The position numbers and the translations under genes were made by a program. From sequence record NC_020851.1: 64,000 bases of DNA. One strand, given 5' to 3'. This document shows positions 23,387-53,711 of the stretch, one piece after another (positions within the stretch are counted from its first letter, which is position 1; each line of letters begins with the position of its first letter). A model generated the notes under the pieces. That model searched no databases. It saw only the letters and a program-made list of their open reading frames with translations, and was not told where the DNA came from.

Positions 23387-24442
23387 TCAAAGAGCATTAC
23401 CTCTTGGAAGGATTTCCTCAATTACAGGAAAGTTTTCGTGTGGTTGGTCAATAGTCATCATCCATTCACGGAGGCCATTGTTCAACAAAATATTTTTCGT
23501 GTAGAAGGTCTCATACGAACCATCTTCAGCAGCACGAATCTCTTGACTCACAAAATCATAAGCACGAAGATTAAGAGCAAGCCCAATGATGCCAATAGAA
23601 GAGACCCAAAGACCCATGACAGGAACAAACAACATAAAGAAGTGCAACCAACGCTTATTGCTAAACGCAACCCCGAAGATTTGTGACCAAAAACGATTTG
23701 CTGTAACCATCGAATAGGTCTCCTCCTCCTGAGTGGAATCGAACGCTTTAAAAGTGTTTGCCTGTTCTCCATCTTCATACAGTGTATTCTCGACAGTAAC
23801 TCCATGAATAGCAGAGAGAAGTGCTCCTCCCAGTATACCAGCAACTCCCATCATATGGAAGGGGTTGAGCGTCCAGTTATGAAAGCCCTGGAGGAAGAGA
23901 AGGAACCTGAAAATCGCCGCAACACCGAAACTCGGCGCAAAGAACCAAGATGACTGTCCCAAAGGATAGATGAGGAATACAGACACGAATACAGCAATAG
24001 GACCAGAAAAAGCAATCGCATTGTAGGGACGGATTCCAATTAGACGTGCCAGTTCAAACTGACGTAACATAAAACCTATAAGTGCAAAGGCACCGTGGAG
24101 AGCAACAAAGGACCAAAGCCCTCCAAGTTGGAGCCACCGTTGAAAGTCCCCTTGAGACTCAGGACCCCAAAGTAGAAGAAGAGAATGACCCATAGCGTCA
24201 GCAGGCGTCGAGACAGCTGCCGTAAGAAAGTTAGCACCCTCAAGATAGGAACTAGCAAGTCCATGGGTGTACCAACTCGTAACAAAAGCTGTGCCAGTAA
24301 GCCAACCGCCAATGGCAAGATAAGCAGTGGGAAGAAGTAGGAGTCCAGACCAACCCACAAAGACAAAGCGATCCCGTTTAACCCAGTCGTCCAAGATGTC
24401 AAACCATCCCCTCCCTGATTGTTGTAATGTTGAAGTAGTCAT
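23387..24442 (-). CDS. psbD: Photosystem II D2 protein
   Basis: [27 protein letters not shown], ends PRGNAL; C-terminal lumenal segment unusually divergent. Confidence 0.98.
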
Positions 24443-24497: not shown

Positions 24498-24592
24498 TGA
24501 GAAGTTATACCTACTTTATGTTTCCGGTAGAGTTGAGGCCAAGTGTCCCGAATAATCTCTGCCAACTTATCGGGTGTGGATGAACTAATCAC
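24494..24592 (-). CDS. Small hypothetical protein (32 aa)
   Basis: GTG start overlapping the talC stop; MISSSTPDKLAEIIRDTWPQLYRKHKVGITSH. Confidence 0.5.
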   Translation of the reverse strand: MISSSTPDKLAEIIRDTWPQLYRKHKVGITSH

Positions 24593-25254
24593 AGACCCTT
24601 GACAGAGTTCCAATCTTTCTGGAACTTCTCAAGACCTTGATCTGTTAGAACATGATTATACATTCCCCAAAATACATGAGGTGGAATTGTACAGATTTCT
24701 GCACCGGCATCAAAACATCTTCCTACTTGATGAACATCACGAACTGATGCGGCAATAATCTTAGTAGTACTAAAGTGTTGATTATAGAGACTAGCAATAG
24801 TCTGAACGAGTGCTACTCCAGAAAGAGAGTTATCGTTCATTCTCCCTACAAAAGGAGAAATATATGCGGCACCAGCACGACGTGCAAGAATTGCCTGTGC
24901 TGCAGAAAATATAAGAGTTACATTAACCTTTCTTCCCACAGAAGCAAGTGCTGTACATGCCTTCAATCCTTCTACAGTACAAGGAACTTTGATTGTGACA
25001 TTCCATAGTCCTTCAAATTCCATTGCCTGGTCAATCATTTCTTCGGCAGTATCGGCAACAACTTCTGCCGATACAGATTCGAATTGATTACTCATAGAAG
25101 AAATCTCTTTGATAACTTCTACAGGATCCATACCACTTGCTTTAATCAGAGTAGGATTGGTTGTAATACCCTCAATCATTCCTGTTGTGTTTGCTTCACT
25201 GATTGCATCAACATCAGCAGTGTCTAAAAATAGTTTCATTAGTTTGCAATTCAA
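24589..25254 (-). CDS. talC: Transaldolase (TalC family)
   Basis: LFLDTA, GITTNPTLI, SAEV (catalytic Glu), TIKVP (Schiff-base Lys), NVTLIFS, YISPFVGR. Likely start at MKLFLDT. Confidence 0.95.
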   Translation of the reverse strand: MNCKLMKLFLDTADVDAISEANTTGMIEGITTNPTLIKASGMDPVEVIKEISSMSNQFESVSAEVVADTAEEMIDQAMEFEGLWNVTIKVPCTVEGLKACTALASVGRKVNVTLIFSAAQAILARRAGAAYISPFVGRMNDNSLSGVALVQTIASLYNQHFSTTKIIAASVRDVHQVGRCFDAGAEICTIPPHVFWGMYNHVLTDQGLEKFQKDWNSVKGL

Positions 25255-26684: not shown

Positions 26685-27764
26685 TCAACCGATGGAAGGA
26701 GCAGTAAGTGCTACAGGAGTTGACTCAGCAGCAGCAAGATCCAATGGAAAATTATGGGCGTTCCTTTCGTGAATCACCTCTAATCCAAGACCAGCACGGT
26801 TGAGAACGTCTGCCCAAGTGTTGAGCACACGACCCTGTGAATCAATCACAGACTGATTGAAGTTGAAACCGTTGAGATTGAAAGCCATCGTGGATACACC
26901 AAGTGCGGTGAACCAGATGCCAACAACGGGCCATGCAGCAAGGAAGAAGTGCAAGGAACGTGAGTTGTTGAATGAAGCATATTGGAAGATCAAACGACCG
27001 AAGTAGCCATGTGCTGCGACGATGTTGTAGGTCTCTTCTTCTTGACCGAACTTATAACCATAGTTCTGTGACTCAGTTTCAGTCGTCTCACGGACGAGTG
27101 AAGATGTAACCAGACTTCCGTGCATAGCAGAGAAAAGAGATCCACCGAATACCCCAGCAACACCGAGCATGTGGAACGGGTGCATAAGGATATTGTGTTC
27201 TGCCTGGAATACAAGCATGTAGTTAAAAGTACCAGAGATACCAAGAGGCATAGCATCGGAGAAAGAACCTTGACCGAAAGGATAGACGAGGAATACTGCA
27301 CTCGCAGCAGCGACTGGAGCAGAATATGCTACACAGATCCATGGACGCATACCTAAACGATATGAGAGTTCCCACTCACGTCCCATATAAGCATAGATGC
27401 CGATAAGGAAGTGGAAGACTACCAGTTGGAAAGGACCACCGTTATACAACCACTCATCGAGTGATGCTGCTTCCCAGATTGGGTAGAAGTGGAGACCGAT
27501 TGCATTTGAACTTGGGACAACTGCACCAGAAATGATGTTGTTGCCATACATAAGTGAACCAGCAACGGGTTCACGAATACCGTCAATATCGACGGGTGGT
27601 GCTGCGATGAATGCGACAATGAAGCAGACAGTTGCTGCTAACAGTGTTGGGATCATCAGTACACCGAACCAACCAACATACAAACGGTTGTTAGTTGATG
27701 TCACCCACTCACAGAAATTCTGCCATGGGGATGTAGATTGTTGCCTTGAAAGAGTTGTAGCCAT
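26685..27764 (-). CDS. psbA: Photosystem II D1 protein (no intron)
   Basis: Uninterrupted 359-aa D1 with [37 protein letters not shown]. Confidence 0.99.
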
Positions 27765-34886: not shown

Positions 34887-35011
34887 AAATCTCCTCCAGA
34901 AAAAATAACATCAACTTGAAACACATCACCCTTCCTTAAACTATCAGTGTCTTCATCCATCCAGATGTTTTCACCAATAATTTCATAATTGTCAAATCCA
35001 ATACTATTCAT
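34883..35011 (-). pseudogene. 42-aa ORF resembling the C-terminal tail of an FkbM-type methyltransferase
   Basis: MNSIGFDNYEIIGENIWMD...DVFQVDVIF; ATGA-coupled on both sides. Confidence 0.4.
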
Positions 35012-35958
35012 AAGTATACTTCCTTAAATTTTTGGCAGACTTTTTCTGGAGTGTAGTCTTGATAACAATTCCATTCTAAAGAATTTATTTCCTTCTTATC
35101 CAAATTTCTTAAGATATGAAGAATATCGGAATAATTTTCATAATAAATTCCTTTTTCTCCAAGTGTATCTATATGGTTTCTTTCTGGAGATTTTTCATAA
35201 GTAATCACAGGTTTATTTCTAATTGAGAACTCTGCACATGATAGACCAAATGATTCTCCAATATACCTAGCATGGAGCATAGCATCACATGTATTAATAA
35301 ATTTTACCTTAGTGTTCATATCAGAGGTGCCTGGTAAATGAATCACTCGTTCATGCTGAATAAAAGGTTCTGTAAACTGAAAAACAAACCAGATATCAGA
35401 TCTCTCAGACAATACTTGTTGTATTGCTTGTTTTACAAAAGGCAAATCAAAAGTTTCCCATCCACCATTTCTACCAAGAACTAAAGCATTCTTAGGAATA
35501 GATAACTCTTCTCTCATATCTTCCTCAATCTCAGGAAGATGCACTATGTAAGGAACATATGGGATAGTATAATTCGTTATTTTAGATAACCATTTAGATC
35601 CCATAGCATAGATATCACCATGAACCCAATTCGATTGCCAATTACCAGAAATAGCATTAACAAGATTTTTACTAACCGAAGATATAACTCCATCCGGATC
35701 TCCACCTTTTTCCATTAAGAAATAATCACATTTATTTTTATCCAAAATAGAATCTATCCCACTGACAGTATCATAAGAAAAAACCGAAAACTCTTTTTCA
35801 AATTTTTTCAAAGCATCGATACTATTAGCAGGATGAGTAGAGGGATACATGATAATTGGATCGACACCAAGGTAATATCTGGTCCAATATGCCCAATCAT
35901 AAATTGCTACAGTAGTCCCTCTCAAAGAGAGGGAATTGTCATGAAAAGCTATCTTCAT
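35008..35958 (-). CDS. GT-B fold glycosyltransferase-like protein
   Basis: RGTTVAIYD, GRNGGWETF, CDAMLHARYIGESFGLSCAEF. Confidence 0.75.
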   Translation of the reverse strand: MKIAFHDNSLSLRGTTVAIYDWAYWTRYYLGVDPIIMYPSTHPANSIDALKKFEKEFSVFSYDTVSGIDSILDKNKCDYFLMEKGGDPDGVISSVSKNLVNAISGNWQSNWVHGDIYAMGSKWLSKITNYTIPYVPYIVHLPEIEEDMREELSIPKNALVLGRNGGWETFDLPFVKQAIQQVLSERSDIWFVFQFTEPFIQHERVIHLPGTSDMNTKVKFINTCDAMLHARYIGESFGLSCAEFSIRNKPVITYEKSPERNHIDTLGEKGIYYENYSDILHILRNLDKKEINSLEWNCYQDYTPEKVCQKFKEVYL

Positions 35959-36764
35959 TTAGAAATTTTTTGTTCCAAATCTTTACGGGCAGTATCTCCA
36001 AGTCCATCCATTTGTTCAAAGAAGGCAAGAGATAGATTGATGTTGTCATCAGTAATTGTTGGACTAAAAGGACCAACTGGTTTGTAACCATACTCCATAT
36101 TCAGAATACGTTGGAAGTTATCTCCTTGGAAAATATCTGCCCAACACTTCTCACCGATGGTAGGAACTGTATCAAGATAGAATGAATAAATGATTTGTTC
36201 GGTGGTTCTCTGACTACCAGTAATAATTTCAGTATTTCCAAAATTGCACTGATTTACAAACGCAATAGCAGACTGTGCATCAATACCAACCTCTTCCATA
36301 CGACCAGGAATGATACTAATATATCCAACATCGTAAGTGCAACACTTCAGTGCAGTTGAAGAATCAGCAAGGCCAGTAACATTAGTAATTACATATTCAT
36401 TGAACTGATCGACATACTCTAATGCTTTCTGGTAGGGAGGAATCTTCATACCAACCTTACAGGTTCCTTGAGTTGCATCAGTAATGATCTTTGCATATTC
36501 AAGGATTATTTCGGGATCAAGATGAGAATAAGGTGCTTGAATATGAACTTCACCTTCATTGTCTCCACGAATATCTGCAACCAACTTACCCATGACTACA
36601 GCATGATCTAACCACTCATCAAGATGATACTTATCAATCTTACTAAATGCATTTGGATTTGTAGTTACACCACGAACCCATTTTGGATTGATATCAGATC
36701 CATACTTATCCATAGTAGATTTTATAAAATCCACATTTGCAGTATCAAAGAAAAAGTCTCTCAT
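35955..36764 (-). CDS. Divergent transaldolase/FSA-family class I aldolase
   Basis: FFFDTA, GVTTNP, GMKIPP (Schiff-base Lys), TNVT, YISIIPGR; Gln (HIQ) at the position of the transaldolase catalytic Glu. Confidence 0.8.
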   Translation of the reverse strand: MRDFFFDTANVDFIKSTMDKYGSDINPKWVRGVTTNPNAFSKIDKYHLDEWLDHAVVMGKLVADIRGDNEGEVHIQAPYSHLDPEIILEYAKIITDATQGTCKVGMKIPPYQKALEYVDQFNEYVITNVTGLADSSTALKCCTYDVGYISIIPGRMEEVGIDAQSAIAFVNQCNFGNTEIITGSQRTTEQIIYSFYLDTVPTIGEKCWADIFQGDNFQRILNMEYGYKPVGPFSPTITDDNINLSLAFFEQMDGLGDTARKDLEQKISK

Positions 36765-37117
36765 AATTGTTTCAAAGTTTCGTTAAAAGTTTTCCAGTTT
36801 TCTAGTCTGACTGCTTTATCGTCAACATAAAAATCTGCAACCGGTTTTCCAAAGTGAAGTTCATCATAAGGAATACCGTGTCTATCTAGCCATTCTACCA
36901 CAATGGGTGATTGATTGGCAATAATTTTACCCAGATTATTATTGTGGGTAACCATGTTTCTAGCAGTCATTATGATAATGTAATGACCTTCTTCTTTTAG
37001 TTTCTGAAGAGTCTCTATTGCACCAGGAATAGGTTTTACATCACTATAATGTTCACCTTCTTTTCTTATATAACAGAGAGTTCCGTCAAGATCAAAACAA
37101 AATTTATAATGTTTCAT
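36761..37117 (-). CDS. Small HAD phosphatase (capsule-biosynthesis type)
   Basis: FDLDGT, MTARNM, FGKPVADFYVDDKA. Confidence 0.88.
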   Translation of the reverse strand: MKHYKFCFDLDGTLCYIRKEGEHYSDVKPIPGAIETLQKLKEEGHYIIIMTARNMVTHNNNLGKIIANQSPIVVEWLDRHGIPYDELHFGKPVADFYVDDKAVRLENWKTFNETLKQL

Positions 37118-38069
37118 AAATTTGATTTAAGATATCCAATCCAGTAATGAACATTGCTTTCTGTCTCTCTAGACTATCATAATGTCTAGCACACATACCA
37201 ATAAAAATACATCCCTCAATCAATATTATCTTTTGATAATCAAAACCAAATCGATTAACCAGATCTACAAACTTCTTATTGATGTTTTGTTTGTTGGATT
37301 CATTCTCAAACTTAAGATCAAACTGATTGCCATTTACATTTACATCAAACTTATCGTAAATGAAATACTCATACCCACCATTGCATGAGTGAGAGATTTT
37401 TGCTAAGTCATAATAAGGATCACCATAATATTTGGTTTCACCAAACATGCCTCTAGGATCAATCATTTTAAGAATTAGATCATTTGTGATGGAATTTACT
37501 CCATACAAAATATTACTAAAACAGAGATCACCATGGATGAAATAGAACTTATCTTCAATTAATTTTGTTTCAATAAATTCTTTTATCTTTCCCCAAATAC
37601 TATCAAAAGATTTAAGTGTCTTTCCATTCAGAACAAATTCATCAACGTTCATCAGTTCTCTGAAGAAATCAAAGTTATACATCAGATTAACATATTCATT
37701 TTCAGTCTTATCAATGAACATCAAAAGAGAATCTCTCCGATTAGCATCGATTGATTGGGAATTCTTATAACAGTTAATATATCCTAAAAGAAAATCAAAT
37801 GCATTTTCCCAAAAGGTATCATCATAATCAGATGATACCATTACATTTCCAAGATTATTATAAGCGTAATATTCCAACTCCAAAGAGTATGGATTTTTTA
37901 AATTACAATCAATTAGTCTTGGAAAAAATACTTTTAGATTACTAGGGAGATCCAAATAATAATTTGCTTCTCCCTTTAATCTATCTTCCTCACTTGTTTT
38001 AATAACACTAGCTTTGGTTTGAGGATTCAGAGTAAATCTATTATATGCTCTAGTCGTAAATTCCATCAA
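37104..38069 (-). CDS. APH/choline-kinase-fold sugar kinase-like protein
   Basis: HGDLCFSNIL, MIDPRG, GDPYYDLAKISHS. Confidence 0.82.
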   Translation of the reverse strand: MMEFTTRAYNRFTLNPQTKASVIKTSEEDRLKGEANYYLDLPSNLKVFFPRLIDCNLKNPYSLELEYYAYNNLGNVMVSSDYDDTFWENAFDFLLGYINCYKNSQSIDANRRDSLLMFIDKTENEYVNLMYNFDFFRELMNVDEFVLNGKTLKSFDSIWGKIKEFIETKLIEDKFYFIHGDLCFSNILYGVNSITNDLILKMIDPRGMFGETKYYGDPYYDLAKISHSCNGGYEYFIYDKFDVNVNGNQFDLKFENESNKQNINKKFVDLVNRFGFDYQKIILIEGCIFIGMCARHYDSLERQKAMFITGLDILNQIYETL

Positions 38070-39493
38070 ACTTTTGCCATAGACTCAAGTGTTGCCTCAT
38101 CAACAGCAGACAATGGAACACTACCTTCAGAATCTTTATTGTAGACTTCATCATGAAGTTCTTCAATAGAAACAAATGTGAGGTTATAAATGTCAGCAAA
38201 TTGCTTAAGATCATCTCCCTTGATCATTTTGCCATACTCATCCATAATCTCAATGATCACCCCAACTTGCTTCATGCCAGCAAGTTTCAAAATTTCCACA
38301 CAACCCTCAGTGTGTCCACGTCTTTCACTCAGAAGTCCTGGACGTGCACGAAGTGGGAACAAGTGACCTGGTTGAGCAAGAGAATCTGGTTTAGAAGAAT
38401 CAGACAGGAAAGTGGAGATAGTTGCTACACGATCATTAACAGACATGCCAGTTGTTGCACCTTCAACAGCATCAATACTGGTGGCAAAGGGAGTTCCAAA
38501 CTCATCACATCCGTTCGAATGCATCATTGGAATACCAAACTGATCCAGTTTTTCCTGTGTGCAGGGAAGGCACATCAAACCACGAGCATGACGCATAGCA
38601 AACAGAAGGTTTTCTGCAGTTGCTTTTTCTGCTGCTAGAACAATATCACCCTCAAACTCACGGTCATAATCATCAACCATGACAATAGGTTTACCATTAC
38701 GAAGATCTTCAACTGCTTGCATTACATTTTGACGTTTAATGTGAAGCATAATATCATTTGGACTACCGAGAGAAACAAACTCATCATCTGCCATATGATA
38801 ATTCATAACTTTTTTGCCTTCAGAAATTAAATAGTTGTAAGTGAGAGATACATACTTTTCCTTAACACAAGACATTTTGCCAGTAGACCATCCAGCGTCC
38901 GTATCATCAGACATTAACTGCTGAGAACTTTCAATAAAATAATTTCCTTCTTTCCAATAGAAAATTCCATTCAGTGCTAGAGGAGAAATTGCAACTTTTT
39001 CGGCAAGACGTGTTGCATATCCATTATCATTGAGTTGAATATGACTGTAAGGACTGTCGGATCCCACTTCAATACCTAAATGATCGTAAGTACTCACAAC
39101 TCCATCAGGATCATTATCTCTAATAAAACTGAGGAACTTATTAGAGTTCCAAGGAGTATACTGATCACAATTGGTGACAACTAGTGGTTCAGAGGTATCA
39201 ATGTTTGCTTTTTGAATTCCCAACAAACAAGTTTCTGCTTGACCAAGTGTTGACTTTCCAATGTCAACGATTTCCAAATTCAGATAGTATTTTTCCTTAA
39301 TACTATTGAGGATATTGATATAGTCTTGTTCTAATCCATTAACAATAACAAAATATTTGCCCGTAAGTTTCAAAGAAGAAAGAGCCCACTCAATCAAAGG
39401 TTTACCTTTGAACTTCACAAATGGTTTGGGATCGATATATCCATTATTTTTAAACCTGGTCCCAAGACCGGCAATTGGAAATAAAATGTTCAT
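38066..39493 (-). CDS. ribB: Fusion of a sugar nucleotidyltransferase and 3,4-dihydroxy-2-butanone-4-phosphate synthase (RibB)
   Basis: N-terminus ILFPIAGLGTRF...PKPF, TLGQAETC, NCDQ, LGSP; C-terminus DDYDREFEGDI, GLMCLP, TTGMSVNDR, PGHLFPL, RRGHTEG, IIEIM. Confidence 0.88.
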   Translation of the reverse strand: MNILFPIAGLGTRFKNNGYIDPKPFVKFKGKPLIEWALSSLKLTGKYFVIVNGLEQDYINILNSIKEKYYLNLEIVDIGKSTLGQAETCLLGIQKANIDTSEPLVVTNCDQYTPWNSNKFLSFIRDNDPDGVVSTYDHLGIEVGSDSPYSHIQLNDNGYATRLAEKVAISPLALNGIFYWKEGNYFIESSQQLMSDDTDAGWSTGKMSCVKEKYVSLTYNYLISEGKKVMNYHMADDEFVSLGSPNDIMLHIKRQNVMQAVEDLRNGKPIVMVDDYDREFEGDIVLAAEKATAENLLFAMRHARGLMCLPCTQEKLDQFGIPMMHSNGCDEFGTPFATSIDAVEGATTGMSVNDRVATISTFLSDSSKPDSLAQPGHLFPLRARPGLLSERRGHTEGCVEILKLAGMKQVGVIIEIMDEYGKMIKGDDLKQFADIYNLTFVSIEELHDEVYNKDSEGSVPLSAVDEATLESMAKV

Positions 39494-39506: not shown

Positions 39507-40178
39507 TTAAATTTCTGAGGTCGTTTTGTTTCTTAAAAATACCCAACCACCATTTGAGGCAGATGGATTTACACATACCATATTCATCTTTTCACGATAT
39601 TCTCTCAGACTATGAAAAAATAATCTGTGATGGCACAAAGGTATCTTATCACTTTGTAGATAGTTTGTCAAATTGTCATATATTTCACAGATCTTTAAAA
39701 TTTTATCTGCTGAAGCACAGAACCATTTGGCATCTAGATGTGTATTTAACCATTCAATACCTTTGACGTATGAAAAATAAAGTTCATCTTTATCCATTTT
39801 ATACTCTTTTATTGATTCATCACAAATACATCCAGCATCTGTTCTGGTGACAATAACAAAATCATATTCATCATCAAACTTTTTTATAATTTCACCAACT
39901 TTTTTCAATGAGTATATTGGTGAAATTGTTTGAAATACACTTTTTGTTATCTTAGATAAATCTGTCTGTTCCGGTATATCGCAAAAATCTTCCTTTTGTT
40001 TTTCTATAATTACTTCCTTGAAATTAAATTCAGAAAGCAATTCATCTTTATCTAAATCAGGGTCCTCCCAAAAATGAGCATAAAAATCTACATCACATCC
40101 ATCATAAAAATTTTCAAAGTTATCTTTCCATAGATCATAGAATCTAGGATATCCAAAAAAACAAATAGCAATTTTCAT
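39507..40178 (-). CDS. Putative glycosyltransferase-like protein (paralogue 1 of 3)
   Basis: MKIAICFFGYPR...YDFVIVTRTD; same pattern as 40182 and 42010. Confidence 0.6.
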   Translation of the reverse strand: MKIAICFFGYPRFYDLWKDNFENFYDGCDVDFYAHFWEDPDLDKDELLSEFNFKEVIIEKQKEDFCDIPEQTDLSKITKSVFQTISPIYSLKKVGEIIKKFDDEYDFVIVTRTDAGCICDESIKEYKMDKDELYFSYVKGIEWLNTHLDAKWFCASADKILKICEIYDNLTNYLQSDKIPLCHHRLFFHSLREYREKMNMVCVNPSASNGGWVFLRNKTTSEI

Positions 40179-40181
40179 AAT

Positions 40182-40910
40182 TTACCAAGAATGTCTGTCA
40201 GGGTCCATTACAAACCAACCAGATCTATTGGGTTGTTTTGCAATGGGATCTATCCCACCATTAACCGGGATTCTTATTAATCCCATTCTATGTATATGAA
40301 TTCCATTATAGGTTTCTGGGTGAAATGCATTTCCTTCATCAAAATATTGATCAACATAATCAATACAAGATGAATACTTATTCATAGTTTCAGAATTACA
40401 TAGAACAGAAGTATCGGATACACCAAGCTTGTTTACAGATTTAAAATCCCATGCAGTTGGAATTAAAATATTCTCATCAATCTTTGCTCTTTCCAATTCG
40501 GTATCTGTTATTGAGGTGTGCCACAAAGCATCAGCTCTAGCCTTTAAACATAAGTCATAAGTAAAATCATTTTCTTTCTCATACTCCAGTTTCAACTCGT
40601 TCACCTTCTTTAGATTATACATTCCAGACAACCAAGTATGAGGTGTTGTTTCTGGTCTTTTTCTCGCATTAAACTTTTCATCATTTGAATGAACTTCCTT
40701 TCTAACTTCTTCAGTATACTCTCTGAGAATATACTTCTTAGGATTCCAGAGTTCTCTAACTTTCTGATCACAATAATCCATGCCCATTTTATTAGGATGT
40801 CCTGAGAAAAAAATATCAGGAGATAGTTTATCAAGAACTACCTCCTTTAGAGAATCATAATCATTTACAAAACTGTCTAATCTACCAATTATAAGTAAAG
40901 CTATTTTCAT
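40182..40910 (-). CDS. Putative glycosyltransferase-like protein (paralogue 2 of 3)
   Basis: MKIALLIIGRLDSF...YDLCLKARAD...HPET. Confidence 0.6.
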   Translation of the reverse strand: MKIALLIIGRLDSFVNDYDSLKEVVLDKLSPDIFFSGHPNKMGMDYCDQKVRELWNPKKYILREYTEEVRKEVHSNDEKFNARKRPETTPHTWLSGMYNLKKVNELKLEYEKENDFTYDLCLKARADALWHTSITDTELERAKIDENILIPTAWDFKSVNKLGVSDTSVLCNSETMNKYSSCIDYVDQYFDEGNAFHPETYNGIHIHRMGLIRIPVNGGIDPIAKQPNRSGWFVMDPDRHSW

Positions 40911-42009
40911 ACAAATCTTGTTGTTGAATTTATATTTAATATCTGATCCTTTATTTCTTCAGTATATACTCCTGCACGAAGAATTACAGTTGGACTATCT
41001 ATATCTCTCAAAACTTCTGGTGATTGAATTGTCAGATCAGTTCCATATAATCTTTTGCCCTGCTTCTTTGTATCATTATCTAATATGGATACAATTAAAT
41101 TTTCATCTATTCCAAAATTCAGAAGGGTTTGAGAAAACACATGGGCACCAAAAAGGTAAACATTATCTTCTATATCATCAAGTATATTAGATACATCACT
41201 TTTTAATTTGTAAATATAATCTAAAAACAAATCTTTTGAATATTCAAAGTTTACATCAACTTTGCCAATGTCACTAGATTTAACTGCTTTTACAAAAATA
41301 GAATGAGTATCAACTACTTTTTTGTCGATAGAAAATCCTGCTCTTGCTAACACATGTTCCAAAACAAACTCATCAAGATAGTAAGTGTGTTCGAAATTTA
41401 TAGTGTTTGTATATCCCCGTTTCAACCAATGCCTCATATTTGGTATTGAGATAAACTGAACACCATCATCAGTAAGATCCTCAAATATTTTTTTAAGAAA
41501 CTCTATGGGATTGTACGCATGTTCAAAAACATGAGAGTGAATAATACATTTATATTTCTCATCAAAAGATTGTGTTTCATAGAATCCTCTAACATATTTC
41601 AATCTAGAATCAGAGGATTCCTGATGTGATGGTTCAATGATTTCATAACTGAACTGAGAATCTAGAGTAGAAAAGTTTTTCCACAAACTTCCAGATGCTC
41701 CACCTATTTCAAGATACCGATCAATGTTATCAGAGTTTTCGATAATAAAATCAAAAAATCTTTTGTGATGTTGTTTCCATATCTTTCCAACACTTCCAGG
41801 AGTATGAGAATTTTCATACAGGATATTAGGATCAATTAAAGTCTTCAGTTGAACTAATCCATTCTCAGAAACACCCCAATCTTGATCAAAAAAGATATCG
41901 TCTTCTACAGGTGTATCAACGCATCCCATAAAGACAGGAAACTTCTCTAAGGTGTATAATTTTTTACGGATGTTTTATTATCTAAAATACAATTGTTTCT
42001 TTCAGTCAT
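40907..42009 (-). CDS. SAM-dependent sugar (C-)methyltransferase-like protein, frameshifted near the N-terminus
   Basis: LEIGGASG, HSHVFEH, SIPN, FEHTYY, FGAH...ILDND..KQGKRLYGT. Coupled ATG at 42009 joins LYTLEKFPVFMGC only if the A6 at 41960-41965 is read as A7. Confidence 0.75.
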
Positions 42010-42809: not shown

Positions 42810-43537
42810 TTAAAATTTGTTTCTAGTAGCCCATATTGGATAATCTTTTCCTGCAATAGTCCAGGCAGGTGCCCAATATGTTTCGTCAGGAATACAATAG
42901 AATTTATACTTCTTACTCATGAGGGAAAAAACTGATTGATCGTGCCTATGATCTTTAAACTCTTTATGGTTCTGTTCTTGTGATGGAGCATCATTAATGT
43001 AAAAATGATCATTTTCTATAGAGATATTTTTTATCTCTTGAATGATATTTCTATTCTCTTGAGTATTCTTAAGAATGAATGTAGTTGCACATCTCTGTCC
43101 AGTGTTCAAGTGATCAAGGGTTTCTGGAAATATTTTTTATATGTATCCATCTTAGTATATGATCTTTCCAAATGTCCAAGATCAAAACACAATGAACCAT
43201 ACTCTGATGTCAGGTTACAATATTCTTTAAATCTTTTAACTCCATCATTATTAAAAGTGCATCCAATATCAGCATAACATATCAAATCATCATCCGGGAC
43301 TAACTCCATAATTTTAGAAATTAAAAAAGACTTCCACATCCAATGCCCATAACCTTTGGTTGATGATAAAAATTTTTCATAAGGAGTTATTTCAGGACAA
43401 AAATCAAATATATTATTTTCCGAAAATAAATTTATAGTAGAAAACTGACCAAAATTATTAGCACCTTGTAAAACTCTCTGATGTGCTCTATGAAAAATAT
43501 TAAATGGTGCACCAAAAGAAACTAAATGAATATTCAT
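42810..43537 (-). CDS. Putative glycosyltransferase-like protein split by a frameshift
   Basis: YGHWMWK...YADIGC in the upstream frame joins KIFPETLDHLNTGQ...HRHDQSVFS if the A6 at 43133-43138 is A7. Confidence 0.7.
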
Positions 43538-44390
43538 GATAAAGATTTAAACAAAAAGTCTTTGATATTATCCAAAGATACTTTCTCAGTAAAAATTGGT
43601 TCTTTTGCCATTTTATTATACAAATTATCTGATTGATCCAATTCAATAATTTTTTGAATTAATTCTTCATCAGACATATCAACTGCATTAATAAAGCAAT
43701 CTGGATTAAAATCTTCACCTATACTTTTATCTCCATAATAAATTGGAATATTTCCTGCAACTTTTCCGTGGAGTAACTTCTCCGTGTGATATCCAGGAGT
43801 TACAGAGTTCTCATAACACAATGAAAACTTATAATTAGAAATCAAATCTAACTTATATTTTTCACCGTCTGGCAAATAGTAATTAGGATTTGCTTTCCCA
43901 AAAACATCTATCTGTTTGTAGTTAGAACATATATTTTGAATTGCATTAATTCTAGATTCAATTTGTTTACCATAAACTATGGAACAAAATTTATCTTTCT
44001 TCTTTTGTGTAAATTCATTATCATTGTATAGATATGATTCTGGAATCAACCAATCAGGATTATCATAACTATTAACTTCAAACCAATCAATGTAAAGATA
44101 CCACAAAGGAAGTCTAAAATTTTTACCTTCATGCTCATCAACATCAAAAGTTAAAGAGTAATCACACCTCTTGAAATTGGGTCTTACATTTTCACCCGTA
44201 AAAAATATTTTTTACAATCTTTGTATCGACCACTCTCATTCCCAAATAAACTGAAGAACATTACATCAGCATCTTCAGGTTCTACAACCTCAACATCCTC
44301 AAACAAATCACGAATGATGTGAATAAAGAAATTGTTATTTGGATCAAATGCTTTTGGATATTGCCAGAAGTCAGAGAATGTTATTTTCAT
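43534..44390 (-). CDS. Alpha-1,3/4-fucosyltransferase (GT10-like) split by a frameshift
   Basis: Adding one A at 44208-44213 gives KKIFFTGENVRPNF...DYSLTFD...RLPLW, continuous with KFCS...YKFSLCYENSVTPGYHTEKL. Confidence 0.82.
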
Positions 44391-45076
44391 GATTGAATAA
44401 AAGATTTATCTAAATTTAAGTGAGATGCTTGTTGTAGTGATGGTTCAGTCCAACCAACTTTTAAATTTTCTTTAATAATAATTTCATTTAATTTGAAATC
44501 TATTGGCCAGTTTATTGGATAAAGATTCTGTATTATCTTCTTAGCAGCATCCAGAGAAAACATCATTGCATGAGTACATCTTGTCAATTGATTTTCTCCA
44601 TAATGAACAAGTCTATTCTCTTTAATATAAGGAGATGTAAAACCAAAACAACTACCCAACATTACACAATCTAATTTTGGATTATAATTATCAAACTCTT
44701 CATAACAGACATTTAAATATTCTTCAAAGTTATCCGGAAGCATAATATCATCTTCCAAAATAACTATTGTTTCATATTCATTTTCAATCTGTTTTTCAAA
44801 ACAATATTGATGTTTCAAATATAATGAAAGTTCTGGAATAGAAACTCTTTTACCAGCATTCTCATACAATGTATACTGATTCTGCTGAACACCAGGAACA
44901 TTAGGATTAATGAATAAGTCTTTCGTTCCTATTACTTCATCATAACTTTCAACAATTTCTTCTGGAGAGAAATTTTCAACCCATTCCACTTCAATATTTT
45001 TAGATAAAAAGAAATTAATTAGATATTCCTTTCTATGTGTCAGTGGTGAATGATGACAAACAAAAATTTTATTCAT
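44387..45076 (-). CDS. GT25-like glycosyltransferase
   Basis: SLYLKH, IVILEDD, RCTHAMMFS...PID. Confidence 0.75.
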   Translation of the reverse strand: MNKIFVCHHSPLTHRKEYLINFFLSKNIEVEWVENFSPEEIVESYDEVIGTKDLFINPNVPGVQQNQYTLYENAGKRVSIPELSLYLKHQYCFEKQIENEYETIVILEDDIMLPDNFEEYLNVCYEEFDNYNPKLDCVMLGSCFGFTSPYIKENRLVHYGENQLTRCTHAMMFSLDAAKKIIQNLYPINWPIDFKLNEIIIKENLKVGWTEPSLQQASHLNLDKSFIQS

Positions 45077-45930
45077 TACACTCTTTTAATAATATTCTCA
45101 AATACACCTTGAAGTGAAAAGTAATCTTGATAGAGTTCCTTACCTTTCTTTAACATCTCATTGTATGTATCGTCAGAAATACTCTTTAAAATATCATATG
45201 CATTTCCGATATTATCATCATCAATTATAACACAGAACTCTTCCCAATCCAATTCGTCAGACCAAGGAAGTGCATGGTCATCAGAAATATAAACAGGAAC
45301 AGTATTCAATTGGAAGGATTCATAGAGTCTGAAACTTGTCGTTCCATATCCCCTGGGACATAGAGAGAACTTAGAAGCAGACATAACATCAAGGAAGTTA
45401 TTCAGTTTTTCTTCTCCAACATTGATATCCCAGTTTCCTGCTTTGACGAGACAATCATCCTTTCCACGGAATGCTTTCATCATATCAGTTCTCACCCAAT
45501 AAGTATTGGATCCAATAAAAGAAGCAAAGTATTTTTGTTCTTGTTTAGGAGTTTCCGGAATAGAAGAACATACCAATGGAATGGGAATTACATTTCCTTT
45601 TTTACGATTACCTCCTGCACAAAAGATCATTGTATCTTCAGGAAAATCTTCAAATGGACCATCATCTTGTTGACAAATAGTAAAGTAAGATCCATCTGAA
45701 CTTAGTGTATCATACATAAGGTTTTGCAGATCAGGATATGGTTGTCCTGCCCAAATCTTATTACAAAAAATATTTGACCAGAAGATATCAATATATTCTC
45801 TTTCTGGTTTATCTTCTAATTGTTGATAATGACTATAAAAATATTCTTCTAGATATTCTCCTTGATGATAGGGAGGATATGTTGGTGTAAGAGACTTTGG
45901 TCTTAGATAATCTTCCTTCAAATAAACCAC
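45076..45930 (-). CDS. Exostosin (GT47)-like glycosyltransferase
   Basis: SKFSLCPRGYGTTSFRLYESFQLNTVPVYISD...LPW. Confidence 0.8.
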   Translation of the reverse strand: MVYLKEDYLRPKSLTPTYPPYHQGEYLEEYFYSHYQQLEDKPEREYIDIFWSNIFCNKIWAGQPYPDLQNLMYDTLSSDGSYFTICQQDDGPFEDFPEDTMIFCAGGNRKKGNVIPIPLVCSSIPETPKQEQKYFASFIGSNTYWVRTDMMKAFRGKDDCLVKAGNWDINVGEEKLNNFLDVMSASKFSLCPRGYGTTSFRLYESFQLNTVPVYISDDHALPWSDELDWEEFCVIIDDDNIGNAYDILKSISDDTYNEMLKKGKELYQDYFSLQGVFENIIKRV

Positions 45931-46589
45931 AGTCCTTCCTCCTTAAACTTATTGATTTTGGTTTCTACACCAACCATCCAATTATTATGAACGATCATAG
46001 CGTTTTCTTTTTTACCTTGTTGATAATACACATTACCATTAGGAAATAAATCCTCAGATAGTAATGCTATATTATCATTATATTTTGTAAGTGCAATACG
46101 ATTCATGATTAGTTGATCATCATCAGAATCATCCACACCACATTCTTCTACTAACTGACGACATTCGAGTGTCTCATTAAATACCATAAAGCCAGTGCAG
46201 ATTGTAGACCCAGGAGCATCAGTTTGAAATAGTACTTCTTCATGACCAGTCAGAATCTCAACAGGATTTTCTTTGAATACAATATCAGTATCAACCCACA
46301 TCAGATTAGGATATTCTTTGTGAACCTGATTAATGATCTTCCACTTGTGACGAACCACATTTCTAAATCCACTATTACTATCAAAAGTCCAATCCTGATA
46401 TTCTTTTAAGTTACTATCCATATAAAGAAAAGCACCTTTATAACCGTCAAGAATAAAAGACTTATAAACGTCTTCATCCATACATGCAATAATAAAGTCA
46501 TCCATATCAATGCCCACTTTTTCAGCAGACCTTAACATATTCAGACAAATATCATGACATCCAGAATTTAAGAATGTAAGAAATTTCAT
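45918..46589 (-). CDS. Nucleotide-diphospho-sugar transferase (GT77-like)
   Basis: LMWVDTDIVF, ICTGFM, DDQLIMN, FPNG, VHNNW...K. Confidence 0.75.
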   Translation of the reverse strand: MKFLTFLNSGCHDICLNMLRSAEKVGIDMDDFIIACMDEDVYKSFILDGYKGAFLYMDSNLKEYQDWTFDSNSGFRNVVRHKWKIINQVHKEYPNLMWVDTDIVFKENPVEILTGHEEVLFQTDAPGSTICTGFMVFNETLECRQLVEECGVDDSDDDQLIMNRIALTKYNDNIALLSEDLFPNGNVYYQQGKKENAMIVHNNWMVGVETKINKFKEEGLWFI

Positions 46590-47536
46590 CGATCTTTATA
46601 CCATTCGTAAGTTGATTTAATACCCTCTTTCAAATCAATCTTTGGTTCCCATCCAAGAGATTTAATTTTAGTTACGCCCAAAAGTTTTCTTGGTGTTCCA
46701 TTTGGTTTAGAAGTGTCCCATGTTGTTTCACCAGGATATCCCACAATACCAGAAATCATATTTGAAAGTTCTTTGATTGTAATGTCTTCACCGGTTCCCA
46801 CATTGATAATATCAGGATCATTATAATCCCTCATACAAGTATAACATGCTTCAGCAAGATCATCAACATGAAGAAATTCTCTCCTTGCCGAACCGTCACC
46901 CCATAGTTCTACATCTGGCCACCAAGGACCTCCCATATCAACACTATAACCATCAGTTGTAGCATGATGATATTTTGCAATCATCGCGGGAAGAACATGC
47001 GAACTTTCTAGGTCAAAATTATCATTTGGACCATATAGGTTTGTAGGCATCAAAGAGATAGCATTAAATCCATACTGCTGATGGTATGCCTGACACATCT
47101 TGATACCAGCAATCTTTGCAATAGCATAAGAATCATTACTAGGTTCAAGAGGACCACTCATTAGATATTCTTCCCTAATAGGTTGTTCACATAATTTTGG
47201 ATAAATGCAGGAAGAACCAAGAAATAAAAGTTTCTTAACACCAAACTTACGTGCAGAATGAATGATGTTTGATTGAATCATCAAATTATCATAGATGAAG
47301 TGTCCGGGATAATCCTTATTAGCACCAATACCACCCACCTTTGCAGCAGCAAGATAAACGTACTCAGGTTCATTGATTTGAAAAAACCTTTCAACATCTT
47401 CCTGACGACGTAAATCCCAATGAGAAGATGGTGATGAAAGAATATTAGTGTATCCTTTCCAATGAAGCATACGGACAATTGCTGATCCTACAAGTCCAGT
47501 ATTACCAGCAACATAAATTCGACTCTGACTATTCAT
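46586..47536 (-). CDS. fcl: GDP-L-fucose synthase
   Basis: [56 protein letters not shown]; start at MNSQSRIY. Confidence 0.95.
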
Positions 47537-48524
47537 GGATACACATGTCCTCAACCAATTGTTTAAAAGAAGTTTTAGGTTCCCAACCCAATTTTTTCTT
47601 TGCCTTAGAGGCATCACCTAATAAGGTCTCTACTTCAGCAGGACGGAAATATTTAGAGTCAATTCTGATAACCGTTTTACCATCAGAATCAATACCAACT
47701 TCATCAAGACCAGAACCTTCCCATCTAATATTCATATCAAAATAAGGTGCAGATTCCTCAACAAACTGACGGACAGAATATTGATTTCCTGTGGCAATAA
47801 CAAAATCATCAGGTTCTTCTTGTTGAAGCATTAACCACATAGCCTCGACATAATCTCTGGCATGTCCCCAGTCACGAAGTGCATCAAGATTTCCTAGATA
47901 TAAACAGTCTTGCTTACCTTCAGAGATTGCTTTTAATGCTCTTGTAATCTTACGAGTTACAAAAGTTTCACCACGTCTTGGAGATTCATGATTAAAAAGA
48001 ATACCACTACAGGCATACATTCCGTATGATTCACGATAGTTCTTTACTATCCAGTACCCATAGAGTTTTGCAACACCATAAGGAGAACGTGGATAGAAAG
48101 GTGTGGTCTCTGTCTGTGGAGTCTCTTGCACCTTACCATAAAGTTCACTGGTGGATGCTTGATAGATACGAACCCTATCTTCCATCTCAAGCAAACGGAC
48201 TGCCTCAAGCACTCTCAGGGTGCCTATGGCATCTGTCTGACCAGTATACTCGGGCATCTCAAACGAAACCTTTACATGACTCTGTGCCCCAAGATTATAA
48301 ATCTCATCTGGTTGAACCTGCTGAATAACCCTCACTAAATTTGTAGAGTCTGTTAAGTCTCCATAATGCAATTTTAATTGATCATAAATGTGATCAATTC
48401 TATGTGTATTAATTAAAGAAGCCCGACGGACAATACCATGAACCTCATACCCCTTTTCAAGAAGAAGTTCTGCTAAGTATGAACCATCTTGTCCTGTAAT
48501 ACCAGTGATTAAAGCAACTTTCAT
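47529..48524 (-). CDS. gmd: GDP-mannose 4,6-dehydratase
   Basis: [59 protein letters not shown]. Confidence 0.97.
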
Positions 48525-49547: not shown

Positions 49548-49853
49548 CTATGAAGGCAATGACCATGTTTTCCATAGTTCTAAAAAGTAACGATCAACTT
49601 GATATAAGTCTTTAGCAGGTGGTATTTCATCAATATTTTCAGACCACTCTCTACAAAGTGCTCTCATCTCACATATAATATTATTGGGTCTAAACATTCT
49701 ACCAAATGAGGACATGGCAAACGCATACCTCATCTTAATGCGCTGTTCCATTTCCGTCATATTTGTCACTTTCATAGTAGATATTTTCACCTTTTCTGTG
49801 CCCGAAATAGATGGTGGCACATAGAAAGGGTAGTGTTCCCCAGAGTAAGACAT
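49548..49853 (-). CDS. Hypothetical protein
   Basis: ORF track; true start probably internal. Confidence 0.55.
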   Translation of the reverse strand: MSYSGEHYPFYVPPSISGTEKVKISTMKVTNMTEMEQRIKMRYAFAMSSFGRMFRPNNIICEMRALCREWSENIDEIPPAKDLYQVDRYFLELWKTWSLPS

Positions 49854-49862
49854 CTGCTAAAG

Positions 49863-50333
49863 TCATATGACATTTCCTGGTGATAAAGATTGAAAAATTT
49901 TAGAACAAGTATCAATAGCAACATGTGCTCCATATACCCCAGAGAAAATATATAAGATACCTAACTTAGAACAGTACAGTTCCAGTTCCTGACATTTTCT
50001 TATATCTGTGGTACTGTAATCAATAATAATATCACCCTCCTCAAGTAAAGGTAGCAACTCATCAAGTGTGTCTTCTGTCTTTTGCTCTGGAAGTGTAATC
50101 TGAAAGATGCCAGGAACTTTTCCGGCACTAGTGTATCTAAGACCATCAGATTTAACTGCCTGAACAAGATACTCTAATGAAGTTACACATCCACTAATAT
50201 ATCCTGCTTCATATTGTCCACAGGCATTCTCATAACTACTGCTACTGTAACCCCAAACTTCCATTCCCTTTTCAATCATACGACGGGACATACCTTCACC
50301 AGTACGACCTAAACCAATCATTCCAACTTTCAT
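49863..50333 (-). CDS. gnd: Truncated, degenerate 6-phosphogluconate dehydrogenase (NAD(P)-binding domain only)
   Basis: MKVGMIGLGRTGEGMSRR, PGIFQ, LLPLLEEGDIIID; the GNS motif and whole catalytic C-terminal domain are missing. Confidence 0.75.
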   Translation of the reverse strand: MKVGMIGLGRTGEGMSRRMIEKGMEVWGYSSSSYENACGQYEAGYISGCVTSLEYLVQAVKSDGLRYTSAGKVPGIFQITLPEQKTEDTLDELLPLLEEGDIIIDYSTTDIRKCQELELYCSKLGILYIFSGVYGAHVAIDTCSKIFQSLSPGNVI

Positions 50334-52995: not shown

Positions 52996-53066
52996 AGCGG
53001 AATACCAGAATCGAACTGGTGACGAAAGGTTGGAAACCTTTAGTTTTGCCTCTAAACTAATTCCGC
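52996..53066 (-). tRNA. tRNA-Gly(TCC)
   Basis: Cloverleaf; anticodon loop TTTCCAA. Confidence 0.92.
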
Positions 53067-53112
53067 AGAGTGGGAGATTGCTCCCCCATCACACTTCCTT
53101 CACACAAGAAGT

Positions 53113-53141
53113 ATTATAAGACAAGATTTGATTCTTGTCAA
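53113..53141 (-). promoter_or_regulatory. sigma70 promoter upstream of tRNA-Gly
   Basis: TTGACA-17-TATAAT with an internal inverted repeat gacaaga/tcttgtc. Confidence 0.75.
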
Positions 53142-53142
53142 G

Positions 53143-53215
53143 TGGGTTTAGTCAGGCTCGAACTGACGACTTGCAGGTTAAAAGCCCGATACTCTACCAA
53201 CTGAGTTATAAACCC
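53143..53215 (-). tRNA. tRNA-Lys(TTT)
   Basis: Cloverleaf; loop CTTTTAA. Confidence 0.9.
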
Positions 53216-53238
53216 AAATCTACTTATTAAAAGTAGAA

Positions 53239-53310
53239 AGCCTTCGACAAGATTTGAACTTGCGACCTGAGCTTTACAAAAGCCCTGCTCTACCACTGAG
53301 CTACAAAGGC
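53239..53310 (-). tRNA. tRNA-Thr(TGT)
   Basis: Cloverleaf; loop TTTGTAA. Confidence 0.92.
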
Positions 53311-53314
53311 AAGA

Positions 53315-53401
53315 CGGAGGATGTTGGATTCGAACCAACGGAAGATTTACACCTTCGACAATTTAGCAAACTGTTGCTTTCGACCACTCAGCCAATCCTC
53401 C
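53315..53401 (-). tRNA. tRNA-Ser(GCT)
   Basis: Long variable arm; loop TTGCTAA. Confidence 0.92.
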
Positions 53402-53406
53402 GTGAA

Positions 53407-53480
53407 TGCCCGAATCCGGACTCGAACCAGAGACCTCACCGTTATCAGCGGTGTGCTCTAACCATCTGAGCTATTCGGGC
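53407..53480 (-). tRNA. tRNA-Ile(GAT)
   Basis: Cloverleaf; loop CTGATAA. Confidence 0.93.
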
Positions 53481-53484
53481 AAAG

Positions 53485-53569: not shown

Positions 53570-53575
53570 AGGTTT

Positions 53576-53702: not shown

Positions 53703-53711
53703 TATGCGACA

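Follow-up and report, generated by a model that had tools for sequence, protein, structure and literature searches.

A predicted nucleotidyltransferase-RibB fusion of cyanophage S-SKS1 lies in a conserved gene cassette with a putative role in nucleotide-sugar synthesis

We have analyzed a window of 64,000 nucleotides that corresponds to nucleotides 1-64000 of Synechococcus phage S-SKS1 (NC_020851 / HQ633071; 100% identity in megablast), a T4-like cyanophage whose record annotates tail sheath, tail tube and T4-like replication genes. The gene under study, SWZG_00042, encodes a predicted nucleotidyltransferase (NT) joined in frame to a RibB domain. Its sole annotation in the record, to which the open reading frame (ORF) is 100% identical, is 3,4-dihydroxy-2-butanone-4-phosphate (DHBP) synthase. 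We propose, with moderate confidence, that the two domains would be the first (RibB) and the last (NT) enzymes of a translationally coupled nucleotide-sugar cassette of five activities that proceeds via DHBP and an aldolase. The activities, the order of the steps and the identity of the product are all inferred. Three partners encoded downstream, a kinase, a HAD phosphatase and an aldolase, are what explains the NT-RibB fusion, and they had been missed in a preliminary description of this stretch. The cassette genes and the parts of the fusion are the following.

38066..39493, minus strand: whole fusion gene SWZG_00042 (NT + RibB), an ORF of 475 amino acids with an ATG start and no internal stop.
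38744..39493, minus strand: predicted sugar-phosphate NT domain of the fusion, residues 1-250, 4evw-like ("NT2"; PF00483, PF12804, PDB 4evw).
38144..38731, minus strand: RibB (DHBP synthase) domain of the fusion, residues 255-450 (PF00926, TIGR00506, gapless alignment, fold).
38069..38143, minus strand: C-terminal tail of 25 amino acids, present only in the S-SKS1 clade (alignment A1) and modelled at low confidence.
37104..38066, minus strand: APH-like kinase of 320 amino acids with HGDxxxSN and IDPRG motifs; its start overlaps the fusion stop by 1 nucleotide.
36761..37117, minus strand: small capless HAD phosphatase of 118 amino acids (PDB 1xpj, E 4e-22) with DxDGT, T-A-R, GKP and DD invariant.
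35955..36764, minus strand: divergent transaldolase/FSA-like class I aldolase of 269 amino acids (PF00923, E 2e-12).

The preliminary description had placed an in-frame NT-RibB fusion at 38066-39493 and had judged an artefactual fusion less likely. Both statements were borne out: the frame runs uninterrupted on the minus strand, Pfam domains cover both halves, and the junction reads ...FVSLGSPNDIMLHIKRQNVMQAVEDL.... A search of 5.8 billion proteins retrieved 351 relatives of the fusion. The best 120 of these were nearly all full-length (~446-478 amino acids), plus a few truncated ones, and most of the 120 carried precomputed PF00483 and PF00926 matches. More than 100 full-length fusion clusters, with 38-98% identity, came from ENA, JGI, Logan, TARA and NCBI assemblies. 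The linker between the domains depended on the clade, being near zero in the S-SKS1 clade and a helix of ~25 amino acids in other fusions. The AlphaFold model of the fusion had a mean pLDDT of 80.5 and a pTM of 0.63, the pLDDT falling below 55 from residue 451 on. A frameshift in sequencing or assembly could have joined two neighbouring genes, as might be suspected from the homopolymer frameshifts reported elsewhere in the window and from a truncated gnd gene nearby. However, the uninterrupted architecture and the length recurred in the >100 clusters, from many projects and platforms and down to 38% identity, and ten near-identical viral contigs preserved the frame. Since fusions of the same length are found in independent assemblies across such divergence, an artefact can be excluded without raw reads, and we regard this explanation as already refuted, with a negligible residual probability. 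The >100 full-length homologues and the invariant NT and RibB motifs described below support that the fusion is real and under selection. We conclude that SWZG_00042 is a genuine fusion of two domains with distinct predicted functions and not an artefact.

The RibB domain matched DHBP_synthase PF00926 at residues 259-447 (E 5e-65; 218.9 bits vs. a Pfam cut-off of 26.4) and the NCBIfam equivalog-domain model TIGR00506 ribB (188.1 bits vs. a cut-off of 177.45). It aligned without gaps to residues 15-205 of E. coli RibB (~45% identity) and also to Y. pestis RibB, the gapless alignment taking in the substrate-covering loops, and its model superposed on RibB structures with a TM score of ~0.87. Every catalytic motif that had been described as retained was found, namely DREFEGD with its Phe, GLMCL, TTGMSVNDR, PGHLFPL, RRGHTE and the late Glu415. 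Residues E279 and H394 of the fusion are the counterparts of V. cholerae RibB Glu39 and His154, which are metal ligands (PMC9305975). Across 20 aligned fusions, the RibB part was invariant at D274, R278, E279, E281, D283, C308, T334, F336, T347, T348, G349, P375, G376, H377, R391, G393, H394, T395, E396 and E415. All positions invariant in 142 housekeeping RibBs were kept in 25 RibBs from cassettes, and the active-site columns conserved in at least 90% of the former were identical in the latter, the Asn position of DRENEGD apart. Because of this identity of the conserved active-site columns, there is strong evidence for RibB-type chemistry as the predicted function of the cassette domain; the evidence for ribulose-5-phosphate as its predicted substrate is good, although not conclusive.

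The Asn at the DRENEGD position was present in 133 of the 142 housekeeping RibBs (94%), none of which had Phe, and in 17 of the 25 cassette RibBs. Phe280 replaces it, beside the metal-binding Glu, only in the S-SKS1 clade (at least 69% identity), and the distant fusions read DRENEGD. The Asn-to-Phe substitution pointed out in the preliminary description is thus real, but it is confined to this clade and is not a feature of the family; we have rejected it as a family hallmark.

The N-terminal half of the fusion matched NTP_transferase PF00483 marginally (21.6 bits vs. a cut-off of 21.2) and also NTP_transf_3 PF12804. The closest solved structure was PDB 4evw, a Vibrio cholerae "nucleoside-diphosphate-sugar pyrophosphorylase" to which no substrate is assigned, matched in sequence (E 3e-10) and in fold (TM score 0.82). 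The 20 fusions shared G9, R13, K23-P24, G84-Q85, N108, D110 and E165-K166, with G11 present in at least 90% of them, and G9, G11, R13, K23, D110, E165 and K166 were invariant in the 7 NT domains of alignment A2. We take these residues to include a G-x-G-x-R plus Lys signature, a metal-binding Asp and an E-K sugar-phosphate motif, with the roles known for RmlA and GlmU. The family model, the fold and the signature residues point to a predicted sugar-1-phosphate NT. Cyanophage SynMITS9220M01 has a 4evw-like NT joined to a small HAD, and in cyanophage S-CAM9 the fusion partner is another domain. A BLAST comparison of the NT domain with RB69 ORF053c revealed no similarity.

Four genes follow the fusion on the same strand, with overlaps of 1, 14, 4 and 4 nucleotides in order. 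The kinase, whose homologues match Pfam APH, was 30% identical to RB69 ORF052c over the catalytic core (BLASTP, E 1e-14), and as a query it matched 294 phage records, RB69-type phages included; alone against PDB sequences it gave no significant match. The small HAD was 30% identical to RB69 ORF051c (E 8e-14) and matched 407 records, among them Serratia phage 92A1 and Mosigviruses. It scored 93 bits, under the cut-off, with TIGR01689, an EcbF/BcbF-like "capsule biosynthesis phosphatase" model. Both queries reached hundreds of RB69-like, Acinetobacter and Serratia phages. In RefSeq, the small HAD of S-SKS1 is labelled "phosphoheptose isomerase", as are its homologues in P-SSM2, S-SM2, S-CAM1, Acj61, PhAPEC2 and many other phages. 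This is apparently a propagated mis-annotation, because the protein has HAD motifs and no SIS domain.

The third partner is a divergent aldolase with a confident model (pLDDT 92), whose best fold matches were TM0295, FSA and sulfofructose transaldolase (TM scores ~0.8). The invariants of its family were D7, T34, T35, N36, P37, K107, N128, T130, S150, R155, S184 and R186; Schiff-base Lys107, Asp7, TTNP, NVT and the phosphate-site GR and GSxRT are kept. With TIGR00875, it scored only 30 bits (24-45 across the family) vs. a cut-off of 246. We have identified two switch positions from PDB 4xz9 (E60Q/F132Y) and 4rz6: the cassette aldolase has Gln76 where transaldolase has its catalytic Glu and FSA also has Gln, and Ile152 where transaldolase has Phe and FSA its catalytic Tyr. 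An extra helix of ~50 amino acids extends the C-terminus. As judged from these features, the cassette aldolase is a distinct subfamily whose predicted catalytic arrangement is unexplained. The phage also has a normal member of this family.

24589-25254, minus strand: canonical talC (TIGR00875, 221 bits).

With this second gene present, the cassette aldolase cannot be taken as a mere booster of the pentose-phosphate pathway, and we have rejected its assignment as an ordinary pentose-phosphate talC. Both genes are labelled "transaldolase" in RefSeq.

We have then compared the gene neighborhoods. The order fusion, kinase, HAD, transaldolase (TAL)-like gene was repeated in five unrelated marine contigs, which bear PhoH, ribonucleotide reductase, dUTPase or DNA polymerase III genes and whose fusions are 38-43% identical to that of S-SKS1. 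Eighty viral loci were gathered via the HAD gene and all cassette components were mapped in them by tblastn. RibB, TAL-like gene and kinase occurred together in 27 loci of this set that had both flanks, and no flank-complete locus in it had RibB without the TAL-like gene or the reverse. Wherever a RibB locus was complete enough to judge, RibB stood with the APH-like kinase, the small HAD and the divergent aldolase. Many phage and giant-virus loci had NT and HAD, with or without the kinase, in the absence of RibB and the TAL-like gene. Cellular loci were obtained by scanning a genome collection with an alignment of the HAD. In the 21 bacterial or archaeal loci found, from several phyla, the kinase, HAD and NT genes commonly stood together as an operon, with no RibB or TAL-like gene within 8 kb of them.

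Two of the bacterial loci showed a kinase with an N-terminal extension (L013, 5999-7981; L016, 6331-7998); the HAD gene and a gene for a 4evw-like NT come next, and L016 continues with a DUF7796 protein and a GT2. The extension in L013 is a second nucleotidyltransferase, an arrangement like that of AfhE (described below). In the giant-virus bins (GVMAG) L056, L058, L066, L071, L074, L076, L079, L081-L083 and L089, the small HAD directly follows a 4evw-like NT; the kinase and a homologue of a methyltransferase of S-SKS1 are sometimes nearby, and RibB and the TAL-like gene are absent from these contigs.

The fusion state of RibB varied. A search with the RibB domain alone, covering 1.8 billion representatives, gave as nearest relatives the NT-RibB fusions, a stand-alone RibB (61% identity) and two proteins of 788 and 762 amino acids; ordinary RibB or RibBA proteins were only 40-47% identical to cassette RibB. 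The two long proteins (P0242 and P0245) are RibB-NT-kinase triple fusions according to Pfam, and the whole length of the S-SKS1 kinase aligns with their C-terminal parts at 34-39% identity. In L118 and L119, the loci of these proteins, genes for a 4evw-like NT, a small HAD and a TAL-like protein are also present; L119 is a contig of a metagenome-assembled genome (MAG) deposited at NCBI. Stand-alone RibB genes (202-213 amino acids) lie immediately upstream of the kinase in L052, L053, L054 and L091, and another is placed likewise in L121. The NT gene stands between kinase and HAD in L053 and 5 kb away in L054 and L091. The occurrence of NT-RibB, stand-alone RibB and RibB-NT-kinase supports a functional link among RibB, NT and kinase.

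Upstream of the triple fusion in L119 (2382-4183) we observed a split transketolase pair, a methyltransferase, a Zn-dependent alcohol dehydrogenase and an epimerase, which may belong to further sugar tailoring. In L118 (6429-11082), a complete-looking heptose set, with a SIS isomerase, a GmhB-like HAD, a GHMP kinase, an NT and oxidoreductases, forms a unit of its own next to the RibB-NT-kinase cassette.

A tree of 167 RibB domains placed the 25 cassette RibBs and four extra stand-alone RibBs on one side of a branch with a support of 0.958. One of these four, P0366, was found with a kinase gene directly after it, and the tree had thereby predicted the gene context correctly. As the cassette RibBs form one clade with alternative fusion architectures, RibB was probably recruited once into the cassette and then fused at least two times, with opposite orientations, to other members of this pathway. 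The cassette RibBs share changes of their own: G-G-V-L to G-L-L-K just before R-x-G-H-T-E, A352V, I307M, I350M, and T-A-F to T-P-F.

These data bear on whether the RibB domain could be an auxiliary metabolic gene that raises the riboflavin, FMN or FAD supply of the infected host, with gene order having fused it by accident. By its predicted residues the domain appears fully functional, and cyanophages do carry host-like metabolic genes, the window itself having psbA, talC, purM, purC and gnd. Still, the annotations contain no other riboflavin gene, either in the window, as had been stated before, or on to nucleotide 114000 of the phage. RibB was always inside the kinase/HAD/aldolase cassette, in any fusion state and in distant lineages, and the separate clade of cassette RibBs argues against repeated captures of host ribBA. 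We consider a role in riboflavin supply very improbable.

In the pathway that we favor, the RibB domain would convert ribulose-5-phosphate from the pentose-phosphate pathway into L-3,4-dihydroxy-2-butanone-4-phosphate and formate (step 1), and the Schiff-base aldolase would join this DHBP to a second carbonyl partner, yielding a cyclisable sugar omega-phosphate (step 2). DHBP, CH3-CO-CHOH-CH2OP, is glyceraldehyde-3-phosphate with a methyl group for the aldehyde hydrogen, and glyceraldehyde-3-phosphate is the natural acceptor of transaldolase and FSA. Since DHBP is the methyl-ketone analogue of that acceptor, the most economical guess for the product of step 2 would be a C-methyl-branched sugar phosphate. 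The conserved phosphate site predicted in the aldolase would fit an acceptor of the length of DHBP, and Ile in place of the bulky Phe/Tyr could make room for the methyl group. The APH-like kinase would then put a phosphate on the anomeric position (step 3) and the small HAD would take off the original terminal phosphate (step 4). Lastly, the NT domain would convert the sugar-1-phosphate and an NTP into a nucleoside-diphosphate (NDP) sugar for use by the neighbouring glycosyltransferases (step 5).

Steps 3 to 5 are read as an activation of the Afh type because the kinase and the HAD are homologous to Afh/RB69 proteins. According to PMC13326640 (2026), the UDP-D-arabinofuranose pathway of phages that arabinosylate 5-hydroxycytosine begins with the isomerisation of ribulose-5-phosphate to arabinose-5-phosphate. 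The 1,5-bisphosphate is formed by the kinase domain at the C-terminus of AfhE, the 5-phosphate is taken off by AfhF, a HAD enzyme, and UDP-Araf comes from the N-terminal NT domain of AfhE; the route reported for AfhE/AfhF of phage HY126 is Araf5P to Araf1,5P2 to Araf1P to UDP-Araf. The counterparts are RB69 ORF055c, 053c:052c and 051c as well as DLP3 gp81-83, and 1xpj is the best structural match of DLP3 gp81, the AfhF equivalent.

Several points weigh against the proposed pathway. The activities of all five cassette proteins are predictions. The change from GGVL to GLLK beside RxGHTE could signal an altered specificity of the cassette RibBs, and the aldolase has neither the Glu known as acid/base catalyst in transaldolase nor the Tyr that serves as such in FSA. 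Moreover, we know of no precedent for a class I aldolase with a ketone such as DHBP as acceptor, or with DHBP as donor, and DHBP made by RibB is L-glycero, opposite to D-glyceraldehyde-3-phosphate. The NT domain of the fusion is on a different branch from the Afh NT; both NT types are present in cellular loci and in the triple-fusion loci, and having two NTs there leaves the role of the 4evw-like NT not settled. Finally, the loci include near-duplicates and were gathered via HAD or fusion genes, so that co-occurrence counts such as the 27 loci above are not independent.

The NT might instead act directly on DHBP, itself a phosphate monoester, giving an NDP- or CDP-dihydroxybutanone that would provide a phosphodiester substituent of a glycan, with kinase, HAD and aldolase serving a parallel branch. 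LicC, acting on phosphocholine, and TarI/Bcs1, acting on ribitol-5-phosphate, are models for such an enzyme. This explanation would leave the strict co-occurrence of RibB with aldolase, kinase and HAD unaccounted for. In addition, RibB and NT are 5 kb apart in L054 and L091 while RibB adjoins the kinase, and RibB is missing from the bacterial and giant-virus MAG loci in which kinase, HAD and NT are found together. Fusions of non-consecutive enzymes are normal in this class of pathways, as in AfhE and HldE. Direct action of the NT on DHBP is thus, in our view, rather unlikely.

The same observations bear on substrate channelling between the fused domains, which the preliminary description had put forward as a possibility. 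We consider it unlikely, because RibB would act first and NT last, most likely with aldolase, kinase and HAD in between, and because in some relatives separate RibB and NT genes lie as far as 5 kb from each other. Joint expression or assembly into a complex is the more probable purpose of the fusion, and this applies to AfhE too.

Another possibility is that RibB acts on a different substrate: the aldolase would first make some other 2-ketose phosphate, from which RibB chemistry (dehydration, 1,2-shift, deformylation) would yield a longer 1-deoxy-ketose phosphate that is then activated. Consistent with this, the cassette RibBs form a separate clade with 40-47% identity to the housekeeping enzymes, and the changes GGVL to GLLK, A352V, I307M and I350M lie near the phosphate- and metal-binding RxGHTE segment; the S-SKS1 clade also alters the Asn beside the metal-binding Glu. 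On the other hand, the housekeeping-invariant residues are kept, the ribB equivalog threshold is passed and the alignment is gapless, substrate-covering loops included. A 1-deoxy-2-ketose has only a tertiary anomeric hydroxyl, which is a poor fit for a kinase and an NT of the Afh type. We therefore hold this alternative to be unlikely.

We have next considered the surroundings of the cassette, where the following features were found.

35008..35958, minus strand: GT1-like gene after the aldolase, with a 4-nucleotide overlap; Glycos_transf_1 E 1.6e-4, below threshold; kept in the S-SKS1 clade.
39507..40910, minus strand: two paralogous genes just upstream of the fusion (223 and 242 amino acids) with weak DUF7796 similarity; synteny by tblastn.
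40907..41929, minus strand: methyltransferase with a sugar C-methyltransferase C-terminal domain (PF13489 + PF08484), syntenic in the S-SKS1 clade.
46586-48524, 43534-44106 and 44387-46589, minus strand: GDP-mannose 4,6-dehydratase (518 bits), epimerase/reductase and GT10 fucosyltransferase-like neighbour.

The cassette lies within a cluster that comprises GDP-mannose 4,6-dehydratase, epimerase/reductase, GT10, GT25, GT47-like, GT1-like, DUF7796-like and C-methyltransferase-like genes, the methyltransferase being co-directional with the cassette; exostosin/GT47-like and nucleotide-diphospho-sugar transferase genes are likewise among its members. The weak GT1-like gene is syntenic in L034-L043, and the module has DUF7796-like neighbours in L009 and in the bacterial locus L016 as well. 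The two DUF7796-like paralogues may be transferases that use the cassette product, and GDP-fucose or a related 6-deoxyhexose is probably produced and consumed by enzymes of the cluster as well.

Such surroundings speak for a glycan acceptor in preference to DNA. A hypermodification of DNA as in RB69 is a possible alternative, for which the first 114 kb of the phage held no supporting genes. RB69 ORF048c (the ThyA-like 5-hydroxy-dCMP synthase) and ORF050c had no homologue in nucleotides 1-114000, the other 94 kb not having been searched. The claim that a riboflavin-type enzyme has been co-opted for the synthesis of a nucleotide sugar or glycan precursor, already made in the preliminary description, is supported as a prediction by the conserved gene order, the three fusion or adjacency states of RibB, its separate clade and the glycosyltransferase, GDP-fucose and methyltransferase genes around it.

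The window also contains genes unrelated to the cassette. Two ORFs of 351 and 359 amino acids are annotated as psbA (23387-24442 and 26685-27764, both minus strand), with talC, an HNH endonuclease and an endonuclease VII gene between them; they could be two copies, or a rearranged or intron-bearing locus. The "6-phosphogluconate dehydrogenase" (gnd) ORF at 49863-50333 (minus strand, 156 amino acids) matches the N-terminal 125-138 positions of models of ~300-470 positions and is followed by a 101-residue ORF (49548-49853, minus strand); gnd may be truncated or split, perhaps by one of the frameshifts reported before. The auxiliary genes purM and purC lie at 19266-20204 and 20901-21599 (minus strand), purN and a purL-like fragment being further along the genome, and a cluster of ten tRNA genes occupies 52996-54077 (minus strand). 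Among the compared loci, L005 (15868-19383) and L006 (10283-13807) have an intein with a LAGLIDADG endonuclease domain in a phage-like DNA polymerase III alpha gene.

RibB is usually treated as a single-purpose vitamin B2 enzyme, and viral copies are counted as riboflavin genes or unclassified metabolic genes. Here it is a fixed part of a predicted nucleotide-sugar cassette, which occurs widely in marine phage contigs and on at least one MAG contig. The analysis corrects the annotations of the fusion (DHBP synthase only), of the HAD ("phosphoheptose isomerase") and of the cassette aldolase (counted as a transaldolase). In our literature searches we came upon neither the fusion nor the cassette, the papers mentioning S-SKS1 did not deal with the gene, and nothing relevant turned up on ribB as a cyanophage auxiliary gene. 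We put forward only tentatively that RibB and the new TAL/FSA-like aldolase form an unrecognized entry to nucleotide sugars, in which DHBP, whose known role is essentially that of C4 precursor of riboflavin, would give rise to a C-methyl-branched or unusual deoxy sugar phosphate that an Afh-like kinase, phosphatase and NT would activate for a glycan of marine phages. If true, this would add an activated sugar and an aldolase chemistry to those known, open another route to branched-chain sugars and give DHBP its first structural, non-cofactor fate. The reprogramming of the pentose-phosphate pathway by cyanophages (talC, gnd, zwf) would then be tied to glycans and not only to NADPH and nucleotides, and the Afh module, described only recently, would become part of a broader family that turns sugar-omega-P into NDP-sugar and in which the front end can be exchanged.

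Compared with known RibB enzymes, which are dimers whose active sites lie where the subunits meet, the S-SKS1 domain shares the fold, the metal ligands, the family-invariant residues and the equivalog score. It differs in being fused to an NT and not to GTP cyclohydrolase II, in having no riboflavin gene neighbours and in belonging to a separate clade with its own substitutions. Similarly, the cassette aldolase resembles the FSA/TalC subfamily (TIGR00875) in its fold (TM score ~0.8), in the Schiff-base Lys, Asp, TTNP, NVT and phosphate-binding Arg and Ser-x-Arg, and in having Gln at the Glu/Gln switch, as FSA does. It is unlike that subfamily in its score (24-45 bits vs. 246), in Ile for Phe/Tyr, in its extra helix and in coexisting with a normal talC in one phage.

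Among activation pathways, those for NDP-heptoses (GmhA, HddA or HldE, GmhB, HddC) start from an omega-phosphate and use an anomeric kinase, a HAD phosphatase and a nucleotidyltransferase. The cassette would follow the same logic and likewise places non-consecutive steps in one protein, as in HldE, whereas its kinase is APH-like and not GHMP or ribokinase-like, and its front end is different. The old "phosphoheptose isomerase" label would imply a GDP-heptose pathway, a reading that we have rejected: the cassette has no SIS isomerase or GHMP kinase, and the true set is separate in L118. The CDP-ribitol synthase Bcs1 / TarI-TarJ performs a reduction and then a cytidylylation with an IspD-like NT. 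It is similar in that an enzyme consuming ribulose-5-phosphate is coupled or fused to an NT for an activated glycan building block; in that case, however, the two steps follow each other directly, and the route does without a kinase, phosphatase or aldolase.

The closest parallel is the Afh pathway. Both would start from ribulose-5-phosphate (proposed for the cassette), both have a homologous APH-like kinase and a small 1xpj-like HAD, both would close with an NT, and both are compact and phage-borne in their gene order. For DLP3 gp81 too, 1xpj is the best structural match, as for the S-SKS1 HAD. The AfhE-like NT-kinase arrangement is itself seen in P0242, P0245 and bacterial locus L013. Unlike the Afh pathway, the cassette has RibB and the TAL/FSA-like aldolase in place of a SIS-type arabinose-5-phosphate isomerase: no SIS domain was found in the cassette and no RB69 ORF055c homologue in nucleotides 1-114000 of the phage. 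Furthermore, the S-SKS1 kinase stands alone, and an NT of the 4evw branch is fused to RibB and not to the kinase. The activation logic has precedents in the Afh and heptose pathways; the novelty of the cassette lies in its front end, for which RibB and a novel aldolase would have been recruited.

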